Source: Utricularia gibba (lineage: Eukaryota > Plantae > Magnoliophyta). Taken from it: a stretch of 64,000 nucleotides of DNA. Under the pieces are notes generated by a model, which searched no databases, was not told the origin of the DNA, and saw only the letters and a list, made by a program, of their open reading frames with translations. Every line of letters begins with the position of its first letter. Within the stretch, counting starts at the first letter, position 1. Positions 9,205 through 63,853 of the stretch are shown here, piece by piece. The DNA lies in the NCBI GenBank assembly GCA_002189035.1, contig NEEC01000004.1:186001-250000 (forward strand), written 5' to 3'. The position numbers and the translations under genes are program-made.

Positions 9205-10528
9205 GTTTACTATTCCAATACTTCCAAAACAGGTTTATCTAACATTTCATTCGGAGATGCTTACGATGAGCTAACGGCAAGACAACAACTTGCCCAATTA
9301 AAAACAAAGAATTCCAAAGGAATCCAAATCACACCAATGCAATCTAAACCCCAAATGAAAGCCCCTCCAAATGGAACGTAATGTAAGCATGATATCAACG
9401 AAAAGCTAAAACCATAGATATGAATTCACAAATCTAAAATAGCATCAGAAAGCTGATCGTTGCTCCAAATAGAGTACTAGATAAAATGCTTCTTCATAAA
9501 GGCGACAAAATGTTGACACGAATGAATAAGAGTGGCCGTAGATGACGGACGGTGGGCATTGTCCAAAAAACCACCACTACGCAAGAAGACAGAAATGCTC
9601 CGAATACTTGCAATATCACGGAAAAGCAGTCACTCAAAATGTTAAAGGAGAAATTTCTTCTTCCAAGAAGTAAAGGCTACGGAAATGATTGAGGAGAATA
9701 ATGATTCCTAGAAAGACCCTTTTGTCCGCCTCATCGTCCAGTCACAAAGATTCCGATTTGACTTCGGGGAACAAGATTCCTACTAGCAACATAGCCGCAG
9801 GAAACCAAATTGGCACTTTATTCGACAAAGAAGCCAAGAAGAAGCGGAAAACCAGCGACACATAAGTAAGAGTTGATATCCCAGAAAGAAAAAGCATAAT
9901 AGGAGCGGATTACTGAGAATCCCCCAGACCCAAACTCGAAGAAATCCATATTCTTCAGGATTCTGCGAAACTGCAGCTTGAAGACGCACTGTTGAGCACA
10001 CCACCATCACTGGCATGCTCGAATCCAGTTGAGGAACTGGATCTTTGGGCCAGAGAATTATTCCTTTTTAAATAGCTGCAGGAAAATGGATTGGTTTGGC
10101 CCAACTAGATTTATTTACAGCCCAATTTAATCAATACATGAATAGCTCAAACATTTTCATTGGTCAGGCCCAATAAATTTTCCATCAATTATCGAAAATT
10201 TAAATAAAAAAGAAAACAGACTCCTAAAAAAAAGAAAAAAAATACAGGCAAAAGAGAAGTTAGTACTGTTAGCGCTGAAAGCGAGCGCTCACTTCACTGG
10301 AATCAAGTACTTATTTGAGCTTAAATTTTTCGATATGTCCAAGCCAGCTAAGCACTAAGCACGCTTATGTTTCCGTCTTCAGCACTACGAATTGATTTGA
10401 ATTGGGTGGTGGTAAGGGAGAACTTGGAGGCGGGTGTTTAATGACAAGAGTTGGATATGGCGGCATGGTGAAGGAGCTTTCGTTTCTGGTGAAATTTTGA
10501 TTCTTGTTAAGTGGGGCGTAGAGTTAGA

Positions 10529-20870: not shown

Positions 20871-23800
20871 TTAGTAGTAGTACTTGTCTTTGTGGCTCGT
20901 GGCGTCTTTACACAGCATCGAACGAACCTCGAGGATGCAGCGTGGTAGCTCAAGATCCTTCTCCTGCAATGCATTGCCCACCAAACGCTGCATCTGGGAA
21001 GCGAAGATGTCATTGAGCACCTGGAAAGACATACAAAAATGGGCTTCAGAGCTTGCTTCTTTTTCATGTTGCCTCAATGGCTTGTTTGCCCGACTTACGG
21101 TGACTGCCACTCGTGCGGCTTTGTACCATGACTGGTTCTCCTTTCTGTCCTCGAGGAACTTCATCATATCCTGCCATCAAGAGTTCGTTTGTTATTGATA
21201 ATGAGCGGCAGGGTTAGAAATAGAAGCTAAATCATTTCTAAAAATGCTTCCTTTCAGCAGATACCTGACCCATTCTGCCCCAAAAACTACGGCATACGAA
21301 TATAAACACTTGGGTGTTAAGAGTGGCATGCAGTTGATCAATGGTTTTGGTGAGCATATCCTTCAGAGGTTGCATCCGATGGCGTATATCGGATTCCAGC
21401 CCGTTCTCCTTGGAGTCTTGAATGATCTTCTTTAGCTTTGTGGCGTTGTGCAGCTTCGTCTGCATGTAATAAATAACAATGGTGAGGGATGAAAAAGGGA
21501 TTGAAGCAAAAGAATTCCCTTGTTGAATCCTGACTCACATTCTCCACTATTTTCTCCACAACTGATTGCACATAAGATCTGAACTTGGATCTGATCATCA
21601 CAGTTACTTCACCGAGGCATTCTCCAGGGCCCATGTTCCCAGATTCCGGCATGCACGAACACCATGACTTCAACTGGGATTCTATCGGAGGTTGAAGCGT
21701 ATCAAGCATCCTCGTCATTGAATTCAAAAGAACTCCCAACTGGGAAAAAGAAGCCATCAATTTGATGCAGTGAATGTGTTTTTTTACGGAAAAATGAATT
21801 GTACCTCGACAGAGACAGTGTACATGGGAGCGTTCCCCTTGGTTAACTTCTGCATATACTTCAGGCCGAGTTTCATGGGCTTGGGATTCTCCTTCAATGG
21901 CGACAAAACATCCACAAATTGTCTCTCCAACCTCTCCATCATAGCCTTCTCTACATCGGCGATCGCCTTTCAACCACAAGTAGAGCTGATTAATCTTAGC
22001 TGAAGAACACCACACAGAGCGGAGGAGGCTGCATACCTTCTCCAATGGAAATGTATATTCTGGCCAACGGCTGATTATCACATCATAATCCATGAGTGTC
22101 TCCCTTAACCGGCCATAGATTTCATTGATGAAAGAAGTAGCAGAGAATTGTGCTGCCATGCTAGCACCTTTTACCTGGTAATGTCAATCGCCATAAAGGT
22201 TCTCCGCACATATGGAAAACTGTGAACTTCTGATCAATGTTATTACCTTGTCGACCTTGCAAAGTTCGAGTAACGCTAGCCGTCTTTCTTGAATCCAACG
22301 TGCTATATACACATGGAACAACTCTTTTGCATCAACCCCTCCTTTTATGCTGAAAGGATTTACAGAATGAGATGCGCTCTATAATCAGGCAAGGACAAGC
22401 CAATTCCAAGCACTAAGAAAGTATTCAAAGCAAGTATCTTTCAAACCTGATACCCCACAAAGAAAGATCTCTCTGAAAGTCAGCAGTAGCCATGATCAGT
22501 TCAACTACTGGTGGCGTGGGTCCATGAGGTGGGCATGCGACAAGAAATGCCCGTAGTCTGCTAAACAATTCTGTACAATATATAGAGGAAGACAGATTTG
22601 GAAGATCGATGAAGCTGCACAAAAAATAGGAGATAACAGAAAGTGAGGAAATATTCAGCAGGTCCCTGGATTTGAAATCAGTATCATGAAACACCCCAGA
22701 TTACCTAGGAAGAATATTCTGGTTGTGGATTTCAATGTCGGTCGAAATTTCGTTTCTGATATTCAGACAAAGAGTCTTCATCTTCCTGTAAGCCATTGAA
22801 AGGGCTGCTGGATTCATCATTACGTTGTCAGTGTTGTTGGGTGCATACTCATCTGTTTCAGACAAGTGCCTTCTAGACCTCTTTTTTGTAGCATTCTACA
22901 CAAAAGCAGAAAGCACAAATATGATCATGGCCTCAGATAGCCAATGGCGTACAGAATTGGCACCATGTTCATTATAAGAATTTCTGACCTGAAAACATTT
23001 GCTTAACCTTGACTGCACGTCTGCCGAAAGTATGTCATGCAGAAGCTCGTAAAGTTTCAAAGCAGATGCAAGGGCAGGTGCTGCTTTCCCAGAAGCAGGT
23101 GCAAACTCTTCAACAATTCCCGAGGGTGATGATTCATCAAGGGACTTGTAATTCTCAAACACTAAAGTATGTATCTTGTCAATCTCATTGCAAATTTCTC
23201 CCAGAATACGAGCCTATTGTTTCAAAAGAGACCTATAAGTCAGTCATATCCAATCAAAAACTCAATTGTCATAGTCTTTACCAACCTCTTGATGACTCAG
23301 AGTGTTCTTATTTTTGCCCTTGATTATCACAGGCTGAAGCAAATCATTCACTAAATTTAGACAATCCGACGTTGGAGTAGCAACATCCATAACGTACGAA
23401 AGATATCTGTAAAGAAAAAGTTATATTGGATTCCAATATTCAAGACAGGGGCACAAGCAGAACAATGCTAAGAGCTCTTCAACAAGATAGAGATATGAAG
23501 TGTGTCTATGCAACAAGCATGTTGGACACAAACAAGAAATGGCCGTCTAGGTTAGCCAAGAGATGGCTATCGGTTCAAGAACATAAGTTTGATAAGCTCC
23601 AGTTGAAAAAGAACATGGTATAAATACCTCAGTTTCGTGTATGCATCAGAAACTCCATAGTAAGATGCAAACTCAGCCGTCAACCACTTCCAAGAACCAT
23701 GCAGTGACAAGTTTCTCTGCCGGAACTGTTGGATTTTCATTGCAGCCTCCAACACGCAGTCATAGGCAATGGTTTCAGCCACGGGTGTACACTGTTATAT

Positions 23801-25004
23801 AATTACAGCATTTCAAAGTACACTAAATGAAGGATCTTTTATAAATCAATAAGGTTGAAATATCAGGAAAATCTAGAATACAACTTGTGCATACCTTGTG
23901 GCTGTTTTCATCTGGAGTTGTTGAATAACTGATCGATAATTGGATTCTTCCAACTTGCTCATGCTCCGGTTCATGGTATAGGAAGCATGTACGTAGCTTC
24001 TCACCCTGCATTAGATTTACAGTTAAGGAAAAACTCCCTCCTATTAATGATAAAAAAAAATGGACTTGATCCTGATTTCCTACCGATTCATCAACAATAT
24101 CAGCCACCTGAACCACTGCATGACCACAGTACTTTCCTTTTGAATCATTAACCTCGATCAAAATGTCATCTCCAAGTCCATCCGGCAGGCTACATGAGAG
24201 CAGAAGTAATATTAACTCCGCACAGCTAACTACAAGATGAAGAAGGAAAAAAGATATACATACAGCATTCGGCTTTCTCCTGATCCTGGCTGCATTCTCA
24301 CAGGATCCTCTTCTTGAGAGCTTTTTAGCCGTAATAGACAGGAATATGATTCTGCAGCAAATTAAAATATAATACTTGGGGCATTCGATATTCATCAACA
24401 AAAATATGTAAAGCATGATACCTGGTACCACTTCGTAAGATGGTGAGCTGCCCCTCCAAGCATTGACCCCGACTTTGATGAGCTCTGGAACTTCTCTCAA
24501 ACAACGATGAGTTTCATCGAGGATACGGACCATGCTTTTTTGAAACATTGAGCCGTTTACAGGAATGACTGGAGGTTCACGTTCCCTTTTCAATGCTTTC
24601 TTCTCTGAAGAGACAACTGATTTCACATTTGACATCCGATGCTGAAATGATTCCAACTTCACAATTGATTGAGACTTGAAAGATGTAAATGTACACCCAG
24701 CAGGTGGTTCCATTCCCATTTTCACCTTTCGAACTGCAGAATAACCATTTTATTGAAGAATTTAGGCTCAATAGACCAATAGACTAGTTTGGAATGAGTC
24801 CATGAATATACAGAAACATGTTACCTTGAACTTTAATTTTTCCAATGGTTTTCTTCGTCTTTACAGAAGCTCCTTCACTGACAAGCTTGCTGTCATTGTT
24901 CTGCATGAGCTCTTCCTCCGGTTGTAGCAATATATATTTAAGCCTAGAAAACGAAGGTAAAGGAATTTTAACAGGTGAATTATGCAGCAAAGTACCTGTA
25001 GTAA

Positions 25005-25035
<31 letters not shown>

Positions 25036-26228
25036 TATGTTTGTGAATAATAGTAATTACCCAAAAGCATCCCTCAGCAATGCACATTCGTTTTCCAAAA
25101 ACACAGGTGCTTCCATGCAGCCCCTGGCCCAGGAATGAAGACACAGCCGGACGCATGCATCATATGAAAGAACGGCATACCAATAACCTAGCCCACTGTA
25201 ATATACACGTATAATCAGCAATAATGTACTAGATGAATATACAAAATTCATAGAAAGAATCCTATAGAGAACTGAAATGCACAGTAACAACCTATTAGAT
25301 CATAAGATATTCAACTTGTAAAACAATCAAACTCGTGAGATTACCTTGCATGAAAAGTAGGGTATCGAGCAGGTACAGCACGATATGATGTAGCACCAGC
25401 CCTGTGAAGCAAGCAGATCACCATTTGTTTGAATAATGGAATCTTCTACTAGGAAGACCACGTCTTGGGTTGAAAGGATCATGGGACACAAAATATACCT
25501 GATAGTTTCGCCAGACTTGTTGGCTTCAGTAGGCTCTACTTTTTTGTGACAATGGGTGTCTTCCTCAACCTCAGATGCGAAACCTTTAGATCTGGCAGGA
25601 AGGTTAGAATCAGCCGTCCACTGAGGAGTTTCAGAAGCTTGATTGGCAAATCCACCACCTAGCGGAGGTGCACTTGGGCTATCTTCATGGACGTTTATCT
25701 GATTTCTGGAATTCAAAGAATCCTAGAAACAACAGTAGCATGTTAAAAATATAGGCATCATCAAGCGAATTTTCCAGTAAATGCGACTGAAAGATGATCT
25801 GAAAAACAGGAGTAATTGATTTGTTTATCAGAAAATAGAACCTTTACTGCATGCCCATTGGTCACTTCTGGGCGCCTCACTTGTGTTGAACTCATCTCTG
25901 AACTCGACACGGATTCTGAAGATTCCTCAATTGAATCACCTTTATATATGGATGAACCTCTTACAGAAAATTCCCGCCTTTCCATGTAATTTCCTCCATT
26001 TGTTTGCCTCGTGCTGCCATTGAGAATTTTATCATCATCATCAAGAGAGTATCGAGCACCGTGGGAATCACCCTCAGAACCAGAACAGGTATCCACATCT
26101 GATTCCGACAAATAGTCAGTTACCCTGCCCGGATTCATCCCTGCAGGAAGATAACCACTACGAAATCTGGATACAGAAGGCAATCCAGGACTGGCCGCCC
26201 TATATCTCGCAGCAACATTGCCCGACAT
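20871..26228 (-). CDS. Large multi-exon plant protein of unknown function (At4g24610/At5g65440-like)
   Basis: Recalled family motifs SRFRSGYLP, EDSPSAPP, ARYPTFHAS-GLGYWYAVLSYDACVRLCLHSWARGCMEAPVFLENECALLRDAFG and WLTAEFASYYGVSDAYTKLRYL; ends HKDKYYY-stop. Many canonical introns; not every junction was checked. Confidence 0.82.
25013..25038. repeat. Intronic (AT)13 microsatellite following a poly-A run
   Basis: Read directly from the sequence. Confidence 0.9.
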
Positions 26229-28529
26229 CTTCGTTCTCAACTACCTACAGTATTTCAAATTTTGAGTGGGAACAGAAAACAAAAAGTGGAATCTCAAAAG
26301 ATGTAACCTTTGCATAAAAAAATGCTCGCAGAAATCAATCATGAGCAACTTGGATTTGCGAAACTCGGATCGAATTATCAAAATACAGCCTCTTTTCATC
26401 AACGCTGCTCGCAGCAACGCATCAGAGAGACGGACATTACTATTCACGAAGTTCCAAACCTCAATACAAGAAAAATCCAACGCCCATTATTAAAAAAGAC
26501 TAATTTTGAGTAAGTGGGTATCCGTGATACAGCGCATCACAGATCCTTCTCACCGAAAATTCGAAACCCAGAAAAAAAAAAAAAAAAAAAACCACTACAT
26601 ACACACAGCACCCTACTCACACTTTTCCTTGAACTTCACCCAGTAGATTCCACAGCGTCCCTTTCAATGCCTTCTCAGCGACGCCTCCCAGTATTGCCTA
26701 CACTACTTGAAAACCTGAAAGTCGTGCAGAAACCGGAAGATGCACTTTTTCAATGAGCAAAAGAATAAAAGAAAAAAAGGCCAAAAAAAGAGACGTTGGG
26801 GAATTGAAAATGAGGGAGAGATGCGTGGGGGACGTGGACTCCTATCTTAGTGGTGGATGGATCGCTAGGTTTGAATCCATTGATTGACCTCAACTTTAAC
26901 GGTCGGTCGTTCACCAGCGCCCCGATTCCTCCTCTCCCCGAGCACATGTATTACAGATTTTAGATTTTGAATTCGAGCTTTTCATTTCTTTATTACTTTG
27001 GTAGTTTCTTGCAAATTGTTGAAACTTTAAGAATAAAAGGCAGGAGTCAAGTTTCGTTCAACTACCAAAATTCTGTAAGAATCCACATGTTAATGAAATC
27101 TACCAACTCCTTACCATTATTATCAGTTTGCGTAGGCTGAAAATATGCAAGAATATAGTAGCTAGTGCAGATTATGCGAATCCTTCACTGAACTATTTAA
27201 GTATAATTATGATTCTAATCTACCTAAATTCTTTTAAAAAACAATATTAAATTGGATAACTAACATTCTTTACCACACATATCTATTGCTGATTGGGCCT
27301 CCGTTTGGGCCTTCAAACCAGCATAAGACAGCAATTCCCACGGTAAATTGGGCCTCTTGATGCTTTTTGGTTGCAGCTTGGATTACCCAGGCCTAAACTA
27401 TTGGGCCCCTTGGATGGCCATTTTCGGCCCAATTATTTTGAATACCGCGTCATTATGTGAAAAAAAAAAATATTTTGCTTCTATTATTTATAAAATAAGA
27501 AGCGCGGATCAAAATCTGTATTTCAAGAATATGTTGAACCAATTTAATTCGTTTCGGTTTCGATTATCAGTTTATACACTTATTTGATTATCGGTTCAGT
27601 TAACCCTAATAGTCATCCCTACATTTGACTGTCTTTGCTTATTTCTATTAGATGAATAATTGCATACAAATTAATTTTAACAACATATTTATTTAAATCC
27701 AGTATTGGCGGCTTTAATCCATACAAGTTGTAAATAAAATAAGTATTTATAATTATTTTATTTCTTTAAATAAAAAAAAACTCTTTCTCTAAGTGACTAT
27801 CTAAGAAAAAGAAAAAATATAACTTAAATATTACAGAAAAGAAATCTTACACCCACTTACGAAAACATCTGAAAAAGGGATAAAATCGTTAATTACAAAA
27901 ATAAAACCATTCTATACAGTTCAGCAAGCAACGTTTGGAAATATGTAAAATTAATTCTATTTTTATAGAAGTGATTATTTTTTTAAAACTAAAAAATAAT
28001 TAAATTTTACAGTAATAATTTTTAAATATTCTGTTAGAGTAATTTTTTTACAAACATAGCTTCATAATTTAAATACACTCACCCTTACGTGTTGACGGAG
28101 AGTGGATTGCATCCTCAAAGCAAAAGATGCCCCTAATCTTGCGTGCATCCAAATGCACTCCACTCGACATTACTGCAAAGGTGGAATAAAGGGACCGACA
28201 CCCTTGTGAATGCAACCTTTGGTTACATTGCATGTCTTTCTGTTTCAATATTTCAAGAATTCAACAAAAGGAATGAATACAAAAAAGTGGTTTTCTCCTT
28301 GATCACAACGCATGTTTCTATACATGAATTTACTAACTATAATTATGAAAAAGATCTATATTATGCAAACCTATATTATGGTAATGTACCATATATAATA
28401 CCTACTATGTACTCTTAACATATATTATAGTATGTACCATATATACTAGATATCATATTTATGGTAATACATATCATAACCTATAAATACTTGGTAATCA
28501 TCCATTGCAAACACAACTCGAGGAGCGCC

Positions 28530-28778
28530 ATGGCGGGTACCTATGATTTCGAGATGAAGCGCATCGAATCTGAACTCAGACGGATCCAAGCAAAGAAGGC
28601 GGAGACCCAGTCCCGTATTGAGTTCTTGAGCCAGAACCCCCGTTCCGATCCATGTGGGCGGATAGCGGAATCGCTGATGACAGAATTGCAGAAACACGCC
28701 GCGGCTGAAAGGAAATTGCTTGCTGAAAAGGATGCGCGTATATGGAACTATGCCCAGTTTATGTCATCCACACCATGA
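28530..28778 (+). CDS. Orphan small helical protein, copy A (82 aa)
   Basis: ATG in gccATGG context, TATAAAT at 28482, intact ORF and a paralog at 29850. No family recognised. Confidence 0.65.
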   Translation: MAGTYDFEMKRIESELRRIQAKKAETQSRIEFLSQNPRSDPCGRIAESLMTELQKHAAAERKLLAEKDARIWNYAQFMSSTP

Positions 28779-29849
28779 CCGTAGTTACGCAGTAAGGGGG
28801 AAGAAGCTATCGATCGCCATTTTAGTAGTGTCATGCTTGTTGTGTTTCGTTATTATATTAGTAGGCATAAGTCATGGTTGTGAAGATGCAGAACCGCTAG
28901 GTTCGCTTTATCGAGTATAAGTAATGCATCTGTTTATCTATATACTAAATATTAAAGAAACAGCAGAATGAAAGAAAAAGTTCCAATAGTAGTTGCAGGA
29001 GAAAGCAATTCCCCCACCACAATAAGACACCAATTCCTATAGTACATTGGGCCTCTTGATGCTTTTGGGTTGCTACTTGGATTACCCAGGCCTAAAGTAT
29101 CGGGCCCCCTTGGATGGCCATTTTCGGCCCAATTATTACGAATACCGCGTCATTATGTTAAAAAATGTAATTTGTTTCTATTAATTTATAAAATAAGAAG
29201 TGCGGATCGAAATCAGTATTTTAGGAATACGTCGAACCAATTTATTTCGTTTCCGTTTCGATTATCAGTTTATCGGAAATATGAAATGATAAATTATTTG
29301 CAATAGTTTATTTTTGATAAATGATTTTAAAATTTAATTTACATTTTTTATAAATAATTACAATTAATATCATTTTAGATTATTGAAATAAAGTAATTTT
29401 TAATATAAATTTATTTAAATTAAAATAACACGAAATATAATTTATAAATTTTTATAATATAATTATTTATAGAATATGATATTTTTAATTTATAGATTTA
29501 CAAAATATAATTATTAATAACTATGTCATTTAATTCTAAAAGTTAATTTCTATTTTTTAAATCTACAAAATAAATAATTTTACAATAATAACTTTTAAAT
29601 ATTCTGTTAGAATAATTTCTTACAAACATGCCTCTTACGTGCATGATAACCCTAATCTTGCGAAACTACATGTGCATGATTCCAAATGCATTCCACTCAA
29701 CATTATTACAAATTCTGGAATAAAGCGGGCGACACCGTTGTGAATGCAACTTTCATTACAATGCATGCTTTTCTGTTTCAGTGTTCCAGCAGGCAGCAGC
29801 TATAAATACATGGTAATCTTCCATTGTAGCACACAACTCAAGGAGCACC

Positions 29850-30086
29850 ATGGCGGGTACCCATGATTTCGAGATGAACCGCATCGAATCTGAACTCTTA
29901 CGGATCCAAGCAAAAAAGACAGAGGCCCAGACCCGTCTTGAGTACTTGAGCCGGAACCCCGGTTCCGATTCATCTGGGTGGATAGCGCAGTCGCTGATGA
30001 AAAGATTGCAGAAATACGACAAGGCTGAAAGGAAATTGCTTGGTGAAAAGAATGCGCGTCTATGGAGCTATGCCCCCTCACCATGA
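29850..30086 (+). CDS. Orphan small helical protein, copy B (78 aa)
   Basis: ATG in accATGG context, TATAAAT at 29801, intact ORF. Differs from copy A by substitutions and one 12-nt in-frame indel near the stop. Confidence 0.65.
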   Translation: MAGTHDFEMNRIESELLRIQAKKTEAQTRLEYLSRNPGSDSSGWIAQSLMKRLQKYDKAERKLLGEKNARLWSYAPSP

Positions 30087-30542
30087 CCGCAGTTATGCCT
30101 CCTCGCAGTAAGGGGAAGAAGCTATCGATCACCGTTTTAGTTGTGTCATGTTTGTTGGGTATCGTCATTATATTGATAGGGAAGTGTGTGTCATGCTTGT
30201 GAAGATGAAGAACCAGGTTCGGTTTATTGAGTATAAGTAATGTATCTCTTTATTTATAGAGTACTAAATATTAAATAAGCAGCAGAATGAAATAACAATT
30301 TTCTCTCATCATCAACTCAAATTTTGCGGCCCCTATTATTAGAATAATTAATTCTACGTACATAAATGAAAATGAAATAATTACTAGGAATTCATTGTAT
30401 CTAATCTTTTTTAATATAATTTATATTTATTATACACTTAAAATTTATGTATTCTTCATTCGATATTTAATTTCGATACTTATAGTAATTGCAGAAGAAA
30501 GCCTACAAAAAAACGCATAAAAATGCTATTTTATGAATTCCA

Positions 30543-30575
<33 letters not shown>
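30543..30575. repeat. Compound (TC)7(TA)9 microsatellite just upstream of the dirigent ORF
   Basis: Read directly from the sequence. Confidence 0.9.
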
Positions 30576-30612
30576 GGTGATATCGCTCTCTTTGGCTCAA
30601 TCAATGCTCATC

Positions 30613-31235
30613 ATGGCGAGTGTCTCATACTCCATACTTCTCCTCCAGCTGCTACTCTTCTCCACGGCTGCTTCGGATCCACAACTTGATGCCAAAATCA
30701 AGGAAATGGATCAATATTTTCAAGGACTCATCACCACCAACCCACACTTGTTCCTCACAAAGTTCCAAGTTTACCTCCAAGCCTACTTCTCATCCTCCGT
30801 CTCCCACAATCAAACCATCTACGCAGTCGCCGAGTCCGAGCTCACCTCCACTTCCCCCACCAGCTTCGGCCGCGTCATCGTCCTCGACAACCCCGCAGCG
30901 GCTTCCCCGGAAATTGACTCTCCGGCGAACCTGGACGGTACCAAGGGGTGAATGCCTACTCCGATCTCGGTGAAATTGCGCTTGACATGAATATGAATAT
31001 GGTGTTCAGCGCAGGCAAGTACAACGGGAGCACCATCACCATCATCGGGAGACAGCCTGCAAACCAACCTGTTAGGGTTTTATCTGTGGTGGGTGGCACG
31101 GGGGCGTTTCGTTTCGGGCGAGGGATCGCGCTGGCGAGCACTTATTCTGCGGACCCGGTTACCAAGTCCGGCACTTATTTATATGTTGTGTACGTGGTTA
31201 CCCCTGCCGGCGCCGCCGTCTCGCCGCTGCAGTAG
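30613..31235 (+). CDS. Dirigent-like protein, interrupted by a one-base frameshift at ~30931-30934
   Basis: Signal peptide and SPTSFGRVIVLDNP in one frame; GRYQG...MNMNMVFSAGKYNGSTITIIGR...VVGGTGAFRFGRG in the next frame. No intron signals at the break. Confidence 0.85.
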
Positions 31236-31779
31236 ATGATGTTCCTCAAATGATGTTTGTTTCATTTTCCGACACTTCAAATCCTTAATAAAAGCGAAAG
31301 CTTTCTTGTTTCCGCATCATGATACTTGTATAATCTCTATAATCTCTATGCTCACAATTTCCAGGTTATCTATTATATTAGTGGTCAATGTATTAAAAAA
31401 ATATCAATAATCTTAAAAAAAAGTGTCTTTTGTAAAGTGACACCCCGAGGTTCACGAGCAGCCATTAGGGGTCGACATTTTAAGACAAAAGCAAGCCACG
31501 TGTGTCAAGGATGTGTGCATGTACAACTCGAGCGCATGCAAGAATCTGGAAATACAAATTGTCGGGTAGGTTTGTTTTGTGTTTTCCAAAATTAGAGGTG
31601 TAATAAACTAAAATAAAATTAATGTGCTTCGATGATGTCATTTTTATATCAATGGTGATCATTTCTTTGTGGGTTAGTTGAGTCACGTGGGTTTCAATTT
31701 GGGCATTTTATTACACATTCATAGAATTAATAACGAGGACTCCCCAAACTAGTGACACCATGGGAACAAACGAGGACAT

Positions 31780-32216
31780 TTAAGGAGAAGCATGGGAGCC
31801 CGGAAACTGCTGCTCCGCCCTTTCCTTGATCTCCCGGGCCTTTCCCGCCAGCCTCTCTTGGGCAGTATCCAGCTGCACCGACCCCGGGGGTGTTTTCCTG
31901 TGACGTATCGATAAATCCACGACAGAACACTGAGAGACGCCACCCCGAACCCGCCGGAAGCCAGAAACCCGGAGCAAATGAGGAAAATGGCTATCACCGC
32001 CGGCACGATAACGGGACTGAAGATCACCAATAGCGGGGTGGCGATGGTGAGCGCCACCACGGTTCCGGCCAAAGTCAGGCTCGAGAGGATCAAAAGTGAG
32101 CCAGCAGCAGTTAACCCCGTCGCCGCTTTCACTAGAAGGTGGCTCCGAGGCTGTGGCTGTGGCTGCTGGGCCGCCGTCGCCGACACCAGCCTTCCGGTGG
32201 GATACTGCTCGGTCAT
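31780..32216 (-). CDS. OLE: Oleosin, with a one-base frameshift at 31886-31890
   Basis: Long hydrophobic hairpin with the proline knot [12 protein letters not shown]. The canonical C-terminus ([28 protein letters not shown]) lies in the adjacent frame. Confidence 0.92.
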
Positions 32217-35200
32217 GTTTTCCGTGGATTAGAGAAAGGTGTAAAATGAGAAAATTTAAAGGCATGTGGAGAGGTGTTACGTGTTGATGGGTGATCATGC
32301 ATTGGTGAATTCACCGGTGGGGGTTTTCGTTCTTAGACACGTAGTTTATTTTCTAATTTTCCTGTAATAAATTTTCACCAAAATGTTTAATCATGACTTA
32401 ATTTGCACCCCCTTCGCAATATGGGCCCAAGATGCCAACGTCAGCCCATATTTTCAGGCCTGGAATTCCAGGTCTAGCCCACTTTTGCCGTGCTCCATCA
32501 GTAGCCACTAGCCATTGACTTGGCCTTCCCGAGGTTAGTATACCACTCCTACTTTTCAACTTGTTCTTACATTCTTTTAATATTTTTTTTCAAGACATGA
32601 ATCATTTTGAGCTGACGAGCTTTAGAGCCGCATAATGTTAATCATCATAGCATTTTTTTTTTCCAAGTTCTCATCGTGGATATAATATCAGTTTTGATCA
32701 CATAGCAGCGTTTTCTACTTTTAAAAGTATCCATTCTTACAGAATTTTTCTTGATAGAGATGCAAACCGTACTTCCATGTCATATTGCATTTGAGTGCAG
32801 CCCATGGCGTCACCTCTTGATCACTCAAGTGAGACCCTTGAGTCGGAGGAATGTTGGAAGATTGCTGTAGCAGTCAGCGTTGAATGTATTCCAATTGCTG
32901 CACGATTATCAGAAACAATCATCAGGAATACTCATGTAGGCTTCTGCATCTCACATATCTCTTGTACACTGTTGTCCAAATGGTTAGGATATGACACCCC
33001 TTTTCACAAATCCTTATCCAGCAGAGCCGGGTTTTGTTTGATCTCCAGCTTTTATGGTAATGCATGACCCCCCGGACTCGATGACAGGCTTGCATTCACA
33101 ACGCTTCCTCATTTGTTGAACTTTCTGCTGCTTCTTTAGATTCCTAATCTCTGGGAGCCGCACCAGATACTAACAAAAAAACATGAATCAACATGGTGCC
33201 TCGATTACCTCCTCAATACGATAGTTGCAGGATTATCCAGTGCCACTCCGTCGGTTGAAATGTATGTAAGAACAGTCACCAACATCATAAATGCTGGAAT
33301 ACAGCGCACGTGAAAGCGCCCGGGTGGGTCTAAGTCAAGATTATGTTTTGGATTCCCGTTGATGAATCCCCGGTAGACATTTCTACGACAAATCTGAACA
33401 CACCCTTTATTAATTTTGTAAACAAAATCGTAATCTGAACACTTGACCAGTACTGCATCCCGAATTGCACGGTTGACGAAAGGTCAAGGTTACACCTTGC
33501 TCGGTTGAAGACAGGAGTTGAATACTGTTTTGTTTTTCATGCTCCACTTGACGTGCCAAAAATCGATAGCCCCTCCCTGTTTCGGGCTCACCCACTCGAT
33601 AGCAACAGTGATCCCCTCCAGGATCAAACACTGAAATAATATTAATTATTATTATTAATTATTTGCCAAAAAGAAACATTATTCTCTCGTATTTCTTTCC
33701 GCCGAAATATTTGATCTTGAAAAGTATAAAGATTTTTTAAGAACGTAAACAAAAGACTTGATCCGGTAAACGTAACTTAACAAAAGAATCGAATTTTTTA
33801 ATTCTACTTTTAATTTCAATACTCTTTTTTAAAATTTAAAATGATTTCATATTAGAGCCGAATCGAACGCTGCCCACTTCTAACTAAAATGATGATCATT
33901 TGTATGATGTCTGTAAATTATTAGAACAAATAATTTCATATCAGATTTTAAAAATAAAATAATCAAATATATAGTAAATTTTATATCACTAGTAATTGAT
34001 TATGTTTAACGTTTTCAACATAAAGTATGTTTGATAACGAAGAAAATTTGAACATGAAGATGGAGAAGAAGACATGGAGGGATTTAGGGTTAGAGAGATG
34101 ACGTACCAAAACGAGAGAGCTGCTCTATAGACGTTTACTCAACTTGAACACGATGATAATATTGCATTGATTAGGGGCCGGGTAAGGCCCCCATGGCCAC
34201 AGTCAGTCTGGAGAGTAAGAATCCCCAAGGACAAGAATTCCTATGGCATATCCTCCCACGTCACTGCTACAGAAGTCCACGTGGTCAAGTGTGGTTCGCA
34301 TGTAATTGTTAGAATGTAACTCCAAGACTTGTATTACAACAACGGATGACGGCGACTCGTGACGCCGAATAGTCCAGTCGTACGGTCACCGGCGTCCTCT
34401 TACAGCTGCCACGATAGCACCCCATGCCAACGAGCCCCTCCCTCCTTGCAAAACTACAAGAAAAAACATGAAGCACCTGGTTCGAATCCAAACCATGAAA
34501 CTCCGAATCCGGAGCTGTTGGTTTCCAAAGCGGCAGCAACTTGTACTGTCAATATGAAGATATTGATTTTATTTGTCTTATAATCATCGTATTCGATGGT
34601 TTTTCAATAAATTTTATGGCAAACGTTGTCCTCCTACTCCCCACACCTGTACAATTCAGACACAGGTGGCGGGGAGAGAATCAGACCTGGGATTGGGGCA
34701 CATGGTTCTGTAATATTGCACGTTGATGAGGAAGCAGCCACCCTGTAAAAACTTCCACTTGCATCAGGAATCATGGAATATGTGCATCAAACTGATACCC
34801 TGCGTGCGCTCTAATTGATCTATGGATCCATTGATGCGTTTCATTCATCATGCTCATCAACACAAATATAATAATTAATTCCTTAATCCGTATATAATAT
34901 GATTTCAAAAAAACTTTTTTAAATATTTTCAATTTTAATATTGGTATTAGTGGGCCAAAAACTTAGATATGTTAAAAAATGGGCGTTTTAATTAAAAAAA
35001 AACTTTGTGGATGGCTGAAACCGTTTTTGAAGCACACTGAATGTAAATGAGTTGGGCTTTTGGATATGCATGACATAGGGACAAAAGGAGTTAAAAGGGA
35101 ATTCACACTATTAAATTGTTTTCGTAGTGTGGGCCCCACATGACCCCACATATTAATTTGTGAAATAAAAAAAGGAGAGGATAATTATCAATCATTATTC

Positions 35201-40145: not shown

Positions 40146-41511
40146 GAGCGATGCCTAGTCCTAGGCTCGGGCTGAGCTGCAACATGCCACACTAACCATA
40201 GACGACTCCATATTTATAAAGTGACATCAACTGCACGTTATTACACAAGGTCAACTTACGCTAATTTAATTCGCTAGGCATATGCATTCCTACACTATTA
40301 ACACTCCTTGACTTTATGAAGAGGCACCCACCCCCTTGTCTTAAATTTTAATGTCCGTTTTCATTACATGTGCATCAGTTGCCATTTTTCCAACTCTTGA
40401 TCTCAGAGTTAATCCCTATGGGAAATGATCAGCAGACAATCCCATGCTTTTTCTTCTTACAGCGGACCATAACTTCGTGCCTCCTATTCCACTATTACTG
40501 AGAGTTGTCGAAAAGAAATTGTGTTCTTCATTTAAAGGGAAAAATGCATTACGTGTACTCTACGACTCAACTAGAGACGATGCCGTGGGGATAAGGCAAT
40601 TAGAGCCATTGGTGATGTCCATTAATGATGCTATCTTTTTTGTTATATTTTTGGCTGAAGCTATGACTTTGCTTCTTCTTTTGAGGTATAAAAGAACTTG
40701 TGTCATGCGACATACGGTGATTGACTTTGTTTTACTCTTAGGAAGTCATTACATTCGACATGTTTATTATGTATGGTTAAGAAAAAGGTTAGGGAATTAA
40801 AGCACTTAAGGGGAATGAGGTTAAAAGTGGCATTTTAAGACACAGGGTTGGCCCTCGGCACAAATCCAAGTTGCAAGTCAAATTTGACGAGTTAGGATAA
40901 AATATAACTCGTTGAATCACGGATTGGATACCAAAACTCGAATCACACAATGAATTAACCTGAATTGAATGATTAAAATACAAGTATTGTATTTATTCTA
41001 ACTAGTACTTATTATAATTTGCGAAGTAAAACAGCATCACAATTAACACAATACAATCTCTACACTTAATTGATGATGGTCATAACTTATAAGTAAATAA
41101 ATATGAGTTGATTGAGATCAAATTTGAATAAAAAAAATATAATACAATTCGTACTCATTAAGTACGAATACGAGTCATTCGGTCAACTTGTACTTGGGCC
41201 GAGGGGTACATGATAAAGAAGAAAGGTAAAAAATTGCATTTCATGTTGGTTTTGTACCTACACTGGGCCTGGTACCTTGGAGTTTGAAGCCTTTGAAGGG
41301 AACTGGTACTGGGCCAATTCATGGCTGAATAGCTAACAACCAAAAGCTCAACAAGACGGCCCAGACATTCTAAACCTTTTTATTACTACAACTGGTCTGT
41401 CTGCACTCTGCATCGCCTATCGGATCAGTGTGAGTTATTAGAAATTTGAAGAGAACGACACACAAGCAACAAAGGCATCAATCGCCATTCTCGGGTAACT
41501 CGCCGGAGAAA

Positions 41512-52973: not shown

Positions 52974-53415
52974 ACGTGGCAAGATCCGCGGTTGGGTGCG
53001 GAGACACCTTGCCTTCATGCCCCTATTTTTGGACGGATGATGATGGGAGTTAGTGGAGGAGTCGAGTAGAAGGATACGAGATCGCCGACACGGGGACACG
53101 TGGGTCGTATATTCGGGTGAAAGAATTCGACCCGCACATGTTCAACAAAAGCGTTCTCAACCGCCACTAAAACTTTATAACCAGCCAATTCGGAAACTCC
53201 TCTCGTGCTCGTAACACAAAGCTCATTTTGGATAAAGCTGGTGAAATGTGATTGGTGGGAATAAATAAGTGGGCCCCGTGAAGATAAAAAGTAGATCTCG
53301 CGAATGGGACGTCATTCCAGTCAGCCAATGGGAGACAACCACATCGCCTTCGTCACGTGGAATGGGCCCACCCATAAAATATAATCTCAGTGACTCTATC
53401 GCGTCGCGACGCGTG
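52974..53415. promoter_or_regulatory. ABRE/G-box cluster upstream of the MLRFRPIAPKP gene
   Basis: ACGTGGC at 52974, CACGTG at 53097 and 53354, ACGCGTG at 53409. Confidence 0.5.
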
Positions 53416-62929: not shown

Positions 62930-63853
62930 GCAGACTCTACACGCTGTTCATAAGAAGATTTCTAAACATCCAGTACACCGTGGAGACTCCATATTGGGGT
63001 GGCACAAACTCAACAGCTTGTAACATTCTTTCAGAGGCTTCTCTGAGATATGAACAAGAATCACAACATCATGGAATCTAAGGCAGATTCCTTACATGTC
63101 TTTCTTTGTATAGATTTTTAGTATTTTTTTGTTCATGAAGGGGATGTCTGATGGAGGAGGAGGTACCTGTGTCAGCAGCATGTATGCGAAGTTCTCCATC
63201 CAAACAGCAGCCATTTTGGCTTGAGAATGAGACCCGCAGCAGCAGCAATTGACTGGAACCCGTCGGCAGAAAAACTTGCGTCATCACAGACGTGTCTTAA
63301 GCCCACGAAGCAGCCACGGCATTCACAACACCAACTGAAATCCGGGGATAAATATGATCAATTTAGTGAATTTATAATTAAATATAAATATAATATATTT
63401 TCCAAATATCAACACAAAATGTTTTTTTAAAAAAGATTATCATAAAAATAATTATTAAACATGATTTAAAGTTTCTAAATATATCTAGCATTCAAAAAAG
63501 TAGAAAATAAAAAAATAATATTTTCAACAGTATTTAAAACCCTTGTATTATTCCATTTGAATTTTGTATGAAAAATGAATACGATACCTTCGAGAAAATT
63601 GAAGATGTTACCTGCAATTTCTCTCCGTACACTTGTGGGCCCATTGGAATCCGTGTTACGCAATGGGCCCCACCTACGGTTGTCTCATCCACAACTTCCC
63701 GTACGCGCTTTTAGTGTACAAAATCAAAAACGGCTTTTGTTTTTTTATTTAAACAGCAGCTTCGTAGCGCTTTCGCGGTCTTTCTTCTTTATATAGCAAT
63801 CAACGGAAACGACCATCTGGCACCACAAAATCTCACATTCGCAGCCGATAACC

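Follow-up and report, generated by a model that had tools for sequence, protein, structure and literature searches.

Do two short open reading frames (ORFs) that lie in tandem in the compact genome of the plant Utricularia gibba, and that resemble no protein family known to us, encode real proteins, or are they the remains of a gene that has been lost? The pair (ORF A and ORF B, of 82 and 78 codons) lies in a stretch of 64,000 nucleotides (nt) of contig NEEC01000004.1 (GenBank assembly GCA_002189035.1, positions 186,001 to 250,000 of the forward strand). This whole stretch is called the window here, and all coordinates refer to it. A preliminary description, made from the sequence alone, had treated the pair as orphan genes duplicated with their whole regulatory context, each encoding a possible coiled-coil microProtein. 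Here, we argue for a reading to which we give about an even chance of being right: a real pair of intronless genes, restricted to the lineage, whose soluble coiled-coil hairpin product would act by binding.

The tandem duplication is plain. Both units lie on the plus strand, unit A at about 27317-28972 and unit B at about 29016-30291, and share one order: a 5' block of about 255 nt, a poorly alignable AT-rich spacer, a distal promoter block, a TATAAAT element, the ORF and a 3' flank of about 200 nt. The 5' blocks (27317-27575 and 29016-29273) are collinear duplicates, and the distal promoter blocks (27979-28258 and 29553-29788) align at about 69-83% identity with many small indels. TATAAAT stands at 28482-28488 in copy A and at 29801-29807 in copy B, 48 and 49 nt 5' of the respective ATG. 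ORF A (28530-28778) and ORF B (29850-30086; 68-69% identical to ORF A) are both intact, with identical start and stop codon positions and a good ATG context (GCC/ACC-ATGG). Their difference in length is a single 12-nt in-frame indel near the C-terminus, the sole gap in the ORF alignment. The 3' flanks (28779-28972 and 30087-30291), each a putative 3' untranslated region (UTR), are again collinear, with five gap events. The preliminary description had placed these elements correctly throughout, from the ORFs and their TATA boxes to the strong ATG, the flanks and the indel. Its statement that the whole regulatory context was duplicated also holds as a description, but not as a sign of regulatory constraint. 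Identities between A and B are 87.3% in the ORF, 88.7% in the 5' block, 88.4% in the 3' flank and 82.5% in the distal promoter block; because all blocks diverge at about the ORF rate, conservation of the flanks is simply the default after a fairly recent duplication.

Two copies occur within the window, with neither a third copy nor a parent gene. In DNA sequencing runs the depth over the duplicated units is single-copy-like, and nearby AT-rich repeats reach 5-14 times that depth. Contigs of an independent DNA run (X9) are identical to the window at 28767-29137, across the junction of A and B, and at 29757-30124, an interval that includes the whole of ORF B. Since these independent contigs match exactly, neither the tandem arrangement nor ORF B is an assembly artefact. 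In a second DNA run (X8), a contig of 2973 nt matches the start of unit A (27300-27431) at 93% identity, with 9 differences and a single insertion over 132 nt, and extends 2.8 kilobases (kb) leftward. The same run has no depth over ORF A at a 90% threshold, where gaps in contig coverage are not evidence of absence; the strain of X8 may have a diverged copy A or may lack it. One stretch is particular to copy A: about 214 nt of AT-rich DNA (28259-28472, plus strand) between promoter block and TATA box, opposite a gap in copy B (alignment columns 962-1175). Within it recurs a 'GGTAAT..ACCATATATA'-like unit that resembles TATA-proximal sequence, and the stretch may reflect either local tandem growth in A or a deletion in B.

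The evidence for coding comes mainly from the way in which the two ORFs have diverged. Their 29 differences in 225 ungapped nucleotides are split 16/10/3 among first, second and third codon positions (P = 0.002 for three or fewer at the third position, or about 0.006 if any phase is allowed). Three are synonymous and 26 non-synonymous, against about 7 synonymous changes expected (P = 0.04 for three or fewer), and the ratio of non-synonymous to synonymous rates (dN/dS) is about 2.8. Gap events are also sparse within the ORF: one (the 12-nt, in-frame indel) in 249 alignment columns, as against 19 in 711 columns of the flanks, when about 6.6 would be expected (Poisson P of about 0.01 for one or fewer). 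An ORF of such kind remains open after 31 random substitutions in 18% of simulations.

A third sequence adds to this comparison. Over 29108-30431, a DNA contig of run X8 differs from unit B by 25 substitutions and 4 indels and represents a diverged haplotype of it. Within the 237 nt of ORF B, this haplotype has one change among the 23 of 25 substitutions that are listed (so the count could reach three), namely 30077 C>T, which is synonymous (CCC>CCT); about 5.2 events would be expected (P of about 0.03 for one or fewer). In two paralogs and one further haplotype, then, the ORF appears to have been maintained beyond chance, with a moderate strength set by the roughly 30 differences on which all the divergence tests rest. 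To a moderate degree, the data favour an ORF that would be translated, whose paralogs would have diverged by amino-acid change and which would now be conserved within the species. In the same X8 haplotype, the 113 nt just upstream of ORF B (29735-29847, the TATA box and 5' UTR) carry 10 substitutions together with two indels (7 nt deleted and 1 nt inserted), a sharp local contrast to the ORF itself.

The predicted fold points the same way. From a two-sequence alignment, AlphaFold2 predicts a helix at residues 2-35, a loop at the NP(R/G)SD motif and a second helix at residues 44-79, with a mean predicted local distance difference test (pLDDT) of 92 and a predicted template modelling score (pTM) of 0.73. 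A control fold of the 83-residue ORF on the opposite strand of the ORF A DNA gave a pLDDT of 38 and a pTM of 0.23. The prediction thus supports the two helices joined by an NP(R/G)SD turn that had been proposed from the sequence, and the further proposal that the ORFs as they stand contain neither a signal peptide nor a transmembrane (TM) segment also holds. The predicted product is soluble, slightly basic and about 80 residues long. At the DNA level, both ORFs stand out as islands of higher GC (0.52-0.56) from intergenic DNA with 7-30% GC, as do the neighbouring real genes; for ORF A the values are 0.53-0.56, against 0.16-0.30 in its flanks.

Two other frames were considered as coding and rejected. 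The ORF used as the folding control (28446-28697, minus strand) is exactly antisense, codon for codon, to ORF A. Its phase looks purifying, but it meets three stops in B and folds poorly, and its open frame in copy A is a side effect of a sense frame poor in stops. The sense +1 frame likewise has a purifying-looking ratio, but five stops are common to A and B.

In the searches made, neither ORF has a detectable homolog outside its lineage. Pfam (hmmscan) gave only noise for the ORFs, with a best E of 0.03 that falls far short of the cut-offs, and PDB sequences gave no match. A word-indexed search of 5.8 billion proteins returned nothing for ORF A or for a profile of A and B, and an exhaustive phmmer search of 1.84 billion cluster representatives returned no protein at E <= 0.001. 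An exact-protein look-up of A and B among the called genes of public assemblies found no record, and metagenome and viral contigs held no relative of either ORF. Rfam covariance models gave no match at E <= 1 over 26800-30600, and a structured RNA (including a small nucleolar or small nuclear RNA in the 5' block) was rejected on that ground. In a language-model atlas, a 92-residue Streptophyta cluster scores 0.84-0.85 for A and B, which is within the chance range. These searches had a positive control. That is, the neighbouring oleosin, used as a query against the same protein library, found 249 plant proteins, which indicates that the library is rich in plant proteomes; its best matches (82-84% identity) come from Lamiales and none is identical, which shows that the library lacks the proteome of this species. 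The early statement that the ORFs match no known family is therefore borne out in Pfam, PDB, Rfam, two very large protein libraries, and viral and metagenome contigs. Orphan status in this sense refers to protein libraries and to metagenome and viral contigs, not to a DNA-level search of unannotated plant genomes, and homologs past the genus or family would be hard to detect for a protein of about 80 residues that changes so fast.

Taken together, we propose that the units carry tandem paralogs of a small gene restricted to its lineage, and that each would be transcribed from its own TATA-box promoter. The product, of about 80 residues, soluble and slightly basic, would form one antiparallel coiled-coil hairpin (helix, NP(R/G)SD loop, helix). 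Divergence after the duplication would have been mainly amino-acid-changing, under positive or strongly relaxed selection, with frame, start and stop kept. Such a hairpin has no catalytic site, and its most likely mode of action would therefore be binding: self-association, an A/B four-helix bundle or docking on another helical protein. The duplication, the open frames, the absence of relatives in the searches, the predicted fold and the codon-dependent pattern of substitution are results; expression, translation and oligomerisation of A and B, and any biological role that they may have, are inferences.

A number of results weigh against this proposal. At the nucleotide level the ORF has diverged by 12.7%, as much as its flanks (11-17%), and the sequence as a whole is therefore not under purifying selection; the excess of dN/dS over 1 is only marginally significant, which does not firmly rule out neutral decay. 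No homolog was found in any search, hence there is no outgroup. ORFs rich in Glu, Lys, Arg and Ala are readily predicted to be helical, and the AlphaFold result is in this respect supportive, not decisive. The helices had been called amphipathic, a term that the helical hydrophobic moment does not justify (helix 1 is not significant and helix 2 is marginal, at P = 0.06-0.08); conservation of the hydrophobic core between A and B is no better than in simulated divergence (P of about 0.3). Finally, 28400-30300 is absent from the listed RNA runs. In the RNA contigs of two runs over 27300-32300, a dirigent-family gene (30585-31386) and the oleosin gene (31749-32201), which lie 0.5-2 kb from the ORFs, are covered, and the ORFs are not. 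These RNA sets are few in number and small, with 9-86 million letters of contigs, and a contig can demonstrate presence but not absence, which makes this a weak negative: expression of ORF A and ORF B is unproven, not disproven.

Motifs in the promoters add little here. ACGTG- and TGCATG-like motifs occur in plant promoters regulated by abscisic acid and in seeds. The shared promoter block carries ACGTG at 28087 and TGCATG at 28229 in copy A, and ACGTG at 29637 and TGCATG at 29640, 29673 and 29762 in copy B. They were given little weight because a run in which the oleosin is expressed shows no transcript of the ORFs.

Much of this would also be expected if the two ORFs were the non-functional relics of an older gene. 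That gene, which may have encoded a tail-anchored coiled-coil protein, would have lost its membrane anchor through a frameshift before the duplication, and its copies would since have drifted neutrally with no protein made. We consider this unlikely, though it is the most serious of the alternatives. An ORF that diverges as fast as its flanks, a dN/dS that is not below 1, RNA coverage that was not found in the listed runs and homologs that were not found in the searches all fit such a history. So does the DNA just 3' of the shared stop, where both copies have, out of frame and unmentioned in the preliminary description, a TM-like stretch of two to three Lys/Arg followed by about 20 hydrophobic residues (about 28800-28865 in copy A, frame +1 relative to ORF A; about 30115-30180 in copy B, frame +2 relative to ORF B; both on the plus strand). 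On the simplest reading the stop, which both copies share, predates the duplication, which fits a break of that age. Against the relic stands the pattern of substitution. Neutral drift does not predict a 16/10/3 split among codon positions, the lack of frameshifting indels or an ORF B that is nearly unchanged in the X8 haplotype, and in a compact genome inert DNA would be expected to be short-lived.

The TM-like stretch can be read in other ways too. The simplest is that it arose by chance in a T-rich 3' UTR, or that it is the relic of an older anchor. Combining the latter with the coding evidence gives a more elaborate history for a young, lineage-specific gene pair, in which a tail-anchored coiled-coil ancestor lost its anchor, became a soluble hairpin and was duplicated, and positive selection then drove the copies apart (e.g. 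through co-evolution of a binder and its target, or of an A/B heterodimer). We hold this to be improbable as a whole; if true, it would offer a small and tractable case in which a gene was remodelled and its copies then diverged adaptively.

Less probable still is that A and B are tail-anchored membrane proteins today, of about 100-120 residues, in which splicing of a small or unusual intron joins the ORF to the TM frame or in which the frame break is an assembly error. An open TM frame overlaps the 3' end of the main ORF in both copies. Moreover, the 69-nt ungapped TM block has 9 differences, 4 synonymous and 5 conservative, none of them at a second codon position; this synonymous excess is suggestive, but it is not significant (P of about 0.18). 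An assembly error is a reasonable suspicion in this region since the assembly drops bases in G/C runs (independent reads have an extra G at 31885, 30932, 28096 and 28179), and a single C added to the C5 run at 30073-30077 would join ORF B to the TM frame. In copy B, such an error is ruled out: the X9 contig is gapless over 29757-30124, and X8 reads C4T at the run without an indel. With the sequence confirmed by independent contigs, the frame break in copy B is real. In copy A, an error is very unlikely, as it would need two added bases or one removed base and the sequence is exact from 28767 onward; the C-terminal tail of A turns on a short C run at about 28753-28755, 5' of the confirmed part. 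The unequal offset of the two frames (+1 in A, +2 in B) is a further point against this reading.

Nor is a small intron well supported. Frame-restoring GT/GC..AG pairs exist, but all of those enumerated enclose GC-rich sequence (39-55% A+T, as against 70-90% in the real non-coding DNA of the region) and have no homologous sites in both copies. The minimum length of a plant intron is about 70 nt. Goodall and Filipowicz are said to have shown, in 1989 and 1990 (papers cited by PMC3371709), that plant introns require AU-rich sequence in addition to a minimum length. An N-terminal helical or coiled-coil domain is predicted for both products, as a tail-anchored protein would have. A single in-frame C-terminal TM helix is absent, since the TM-like stretch follows the shared stop in another frame in each copy. 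We conclude that A and B are very probably not tail-anchored proteins today.

The label of microProtein has a stricter meaning than was first given to it. A microProtein is a small (<20 kDa), single-domain protein that is related to the interaction domain of a larger protein which it regulates (PMC9638782). Under this meaning, A and B would be stand-alone interaction domains derived from a larger protein, which they would inhibit through non-productive dimers. Their size and single domain agree with this (82 and 78 residues, one predicted helical hairpin and no other feature). The larger relative by which a microProtein is defined was not found in Pfam, PDB, the two very large protein libraries or the window, which leaves the strict reading unsupported and, in our view, very improbable. 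This lowers the standing of the label, and not that of a possible action by titrating a partner, which A and B may still have. Slighter yet is the chance that the units are fragments of a transposable element or endogenous virus carrying a chance ORF: orphan status and local duplication would suit it, but there are only two adjacent copies in the 64-kb window, their depth is single-copy-like rather than that of the nearby repeats, no terminal inverted repeats occur beyond AT-rich chance matches, and no transposon or viral Pfam domain and no match in viral contigs was found.

The surroundings of the pair bear on how the assembly and the upstream blocks should be read. Downstream lie a dirigent-family gene (30523-31235, plus strand; PF03018 matched in two halves, profile positions 2-55 and 67-147) and the oleosin gene (31749-32216, minus strand), which supplied the positive control. 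Both appear broken in the window. The dirigent gene is split into two ORFs, and one DNA run and two RNA runs have an extra G after 30932 that repairs the frame; the break is a dropped base in a G run, and the gene is transcribed. The oleosin has an apparent frameshift after ...TGKHP, at a site where X9 DNA contigs and contigs of an RNA run (X2) have an extra G/C (31885) that restores the usual C-terminus. This break is an assembly error in a C5 run and not the mark of a pseudogene, and the oleosin is transcribed in X2 and in a further run, X1. In the promoter block of copy A, an X9 contig over 27996-28243 has the extra G at 28096 and 28179 in short G runs (three instead of two), which reflects either undercalling by the assembly or a difference between strains. 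At 30542-30584, the 5' end of the dirigent gene, lies a (CT)n(TA)n microsatellite.

Upstream of unit A, with its exons within 21338-26240, lies a large multi-exon gene of the minus strand, the pieces of which gave no Pfam match where tried. Between this gene and the pair, at the 5' block of unit A, five TGGGCC/GGCCCA motifs (site II-type) fall within about 135 nt (27294-27431), the densest cluster of the window. The window holds 43 such motifs, as against 14.8 expected from shuffles, with further clusters at 10046-10167, 41195-41358, 53270-53365 and 63636-63664; these clusters probably belong to the core promoters of genes of housekeeping type. Two of the five motifs persist in the duplicated 5' block of unit B. 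The 5' block of unit A probably belongs to the promoter of the minus-strand neighbour and was copied along with the rest of the unit.

On present evidence, the locus opens no long-standing question, and its interest is modest; to call it the best candidate for an undescribed system, as the preliminary description did, overstates the case. If expressed, the pair would be one more case of a taxonomically restricted small protein gene, here as two intronless paralogs of about 80 residues with a confident predicted fold, which makes them experimentally easy. Their substitution pattern hints at adaptive divergence right after duplication, and the pair could serve as a small model for the survival of orphan genes in a genome prone to aggressive DNA loss. 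A practical point concerns the assembly: frame breaks in it need checking against reads, given that two neighbouring 'broken' genes are artefactual and the stop of ORF B is real.

How does such a gene pair compare with known systems? By language-model features, the nearest Pfam-bearing clusters are CCDC167-type proteins and the C-terminal region of Bap31 (scores of 0.75-0.79), in which a coiled coil is followed by a C-terminal TM segment. The locus likewise has a coiled coil and then a TM-like stretch, but scores of this size lie within the range of chance, no match is obtained with hmmscan and the TM-like stretch here is out of frame. By shape, the closest proteins are antiparallel hairpins such as the N-terminal arm of seryl-tRNA synthetase, Kif21A (5nfd), designed hairpins (5j0k) and a CT398-like hairpin. 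They share the predicted fold over 72-82 residues (TM-score by query of 0.8-0.9); structure searches with Foldseek returned only such generic antiparallel coiled-coil hairpins, with a best E of 0.08-0.3, none at 0.001, and identities of 11-23%, so that the match is one of shape, with no sign of common descent or function. By size and possible mode of action, the comparison is with plant microProteins of the LITTLE ZIPPER/ZPR type (PMC9638782). These are recognisably related to a larger multidomain target, and A and B differ from them in having no such relative in the searches made. Like them, A and B would be proteins below 20 kDa with one helical interaction-type domain, for which binding or titration of a partner is a plausible mode of action.

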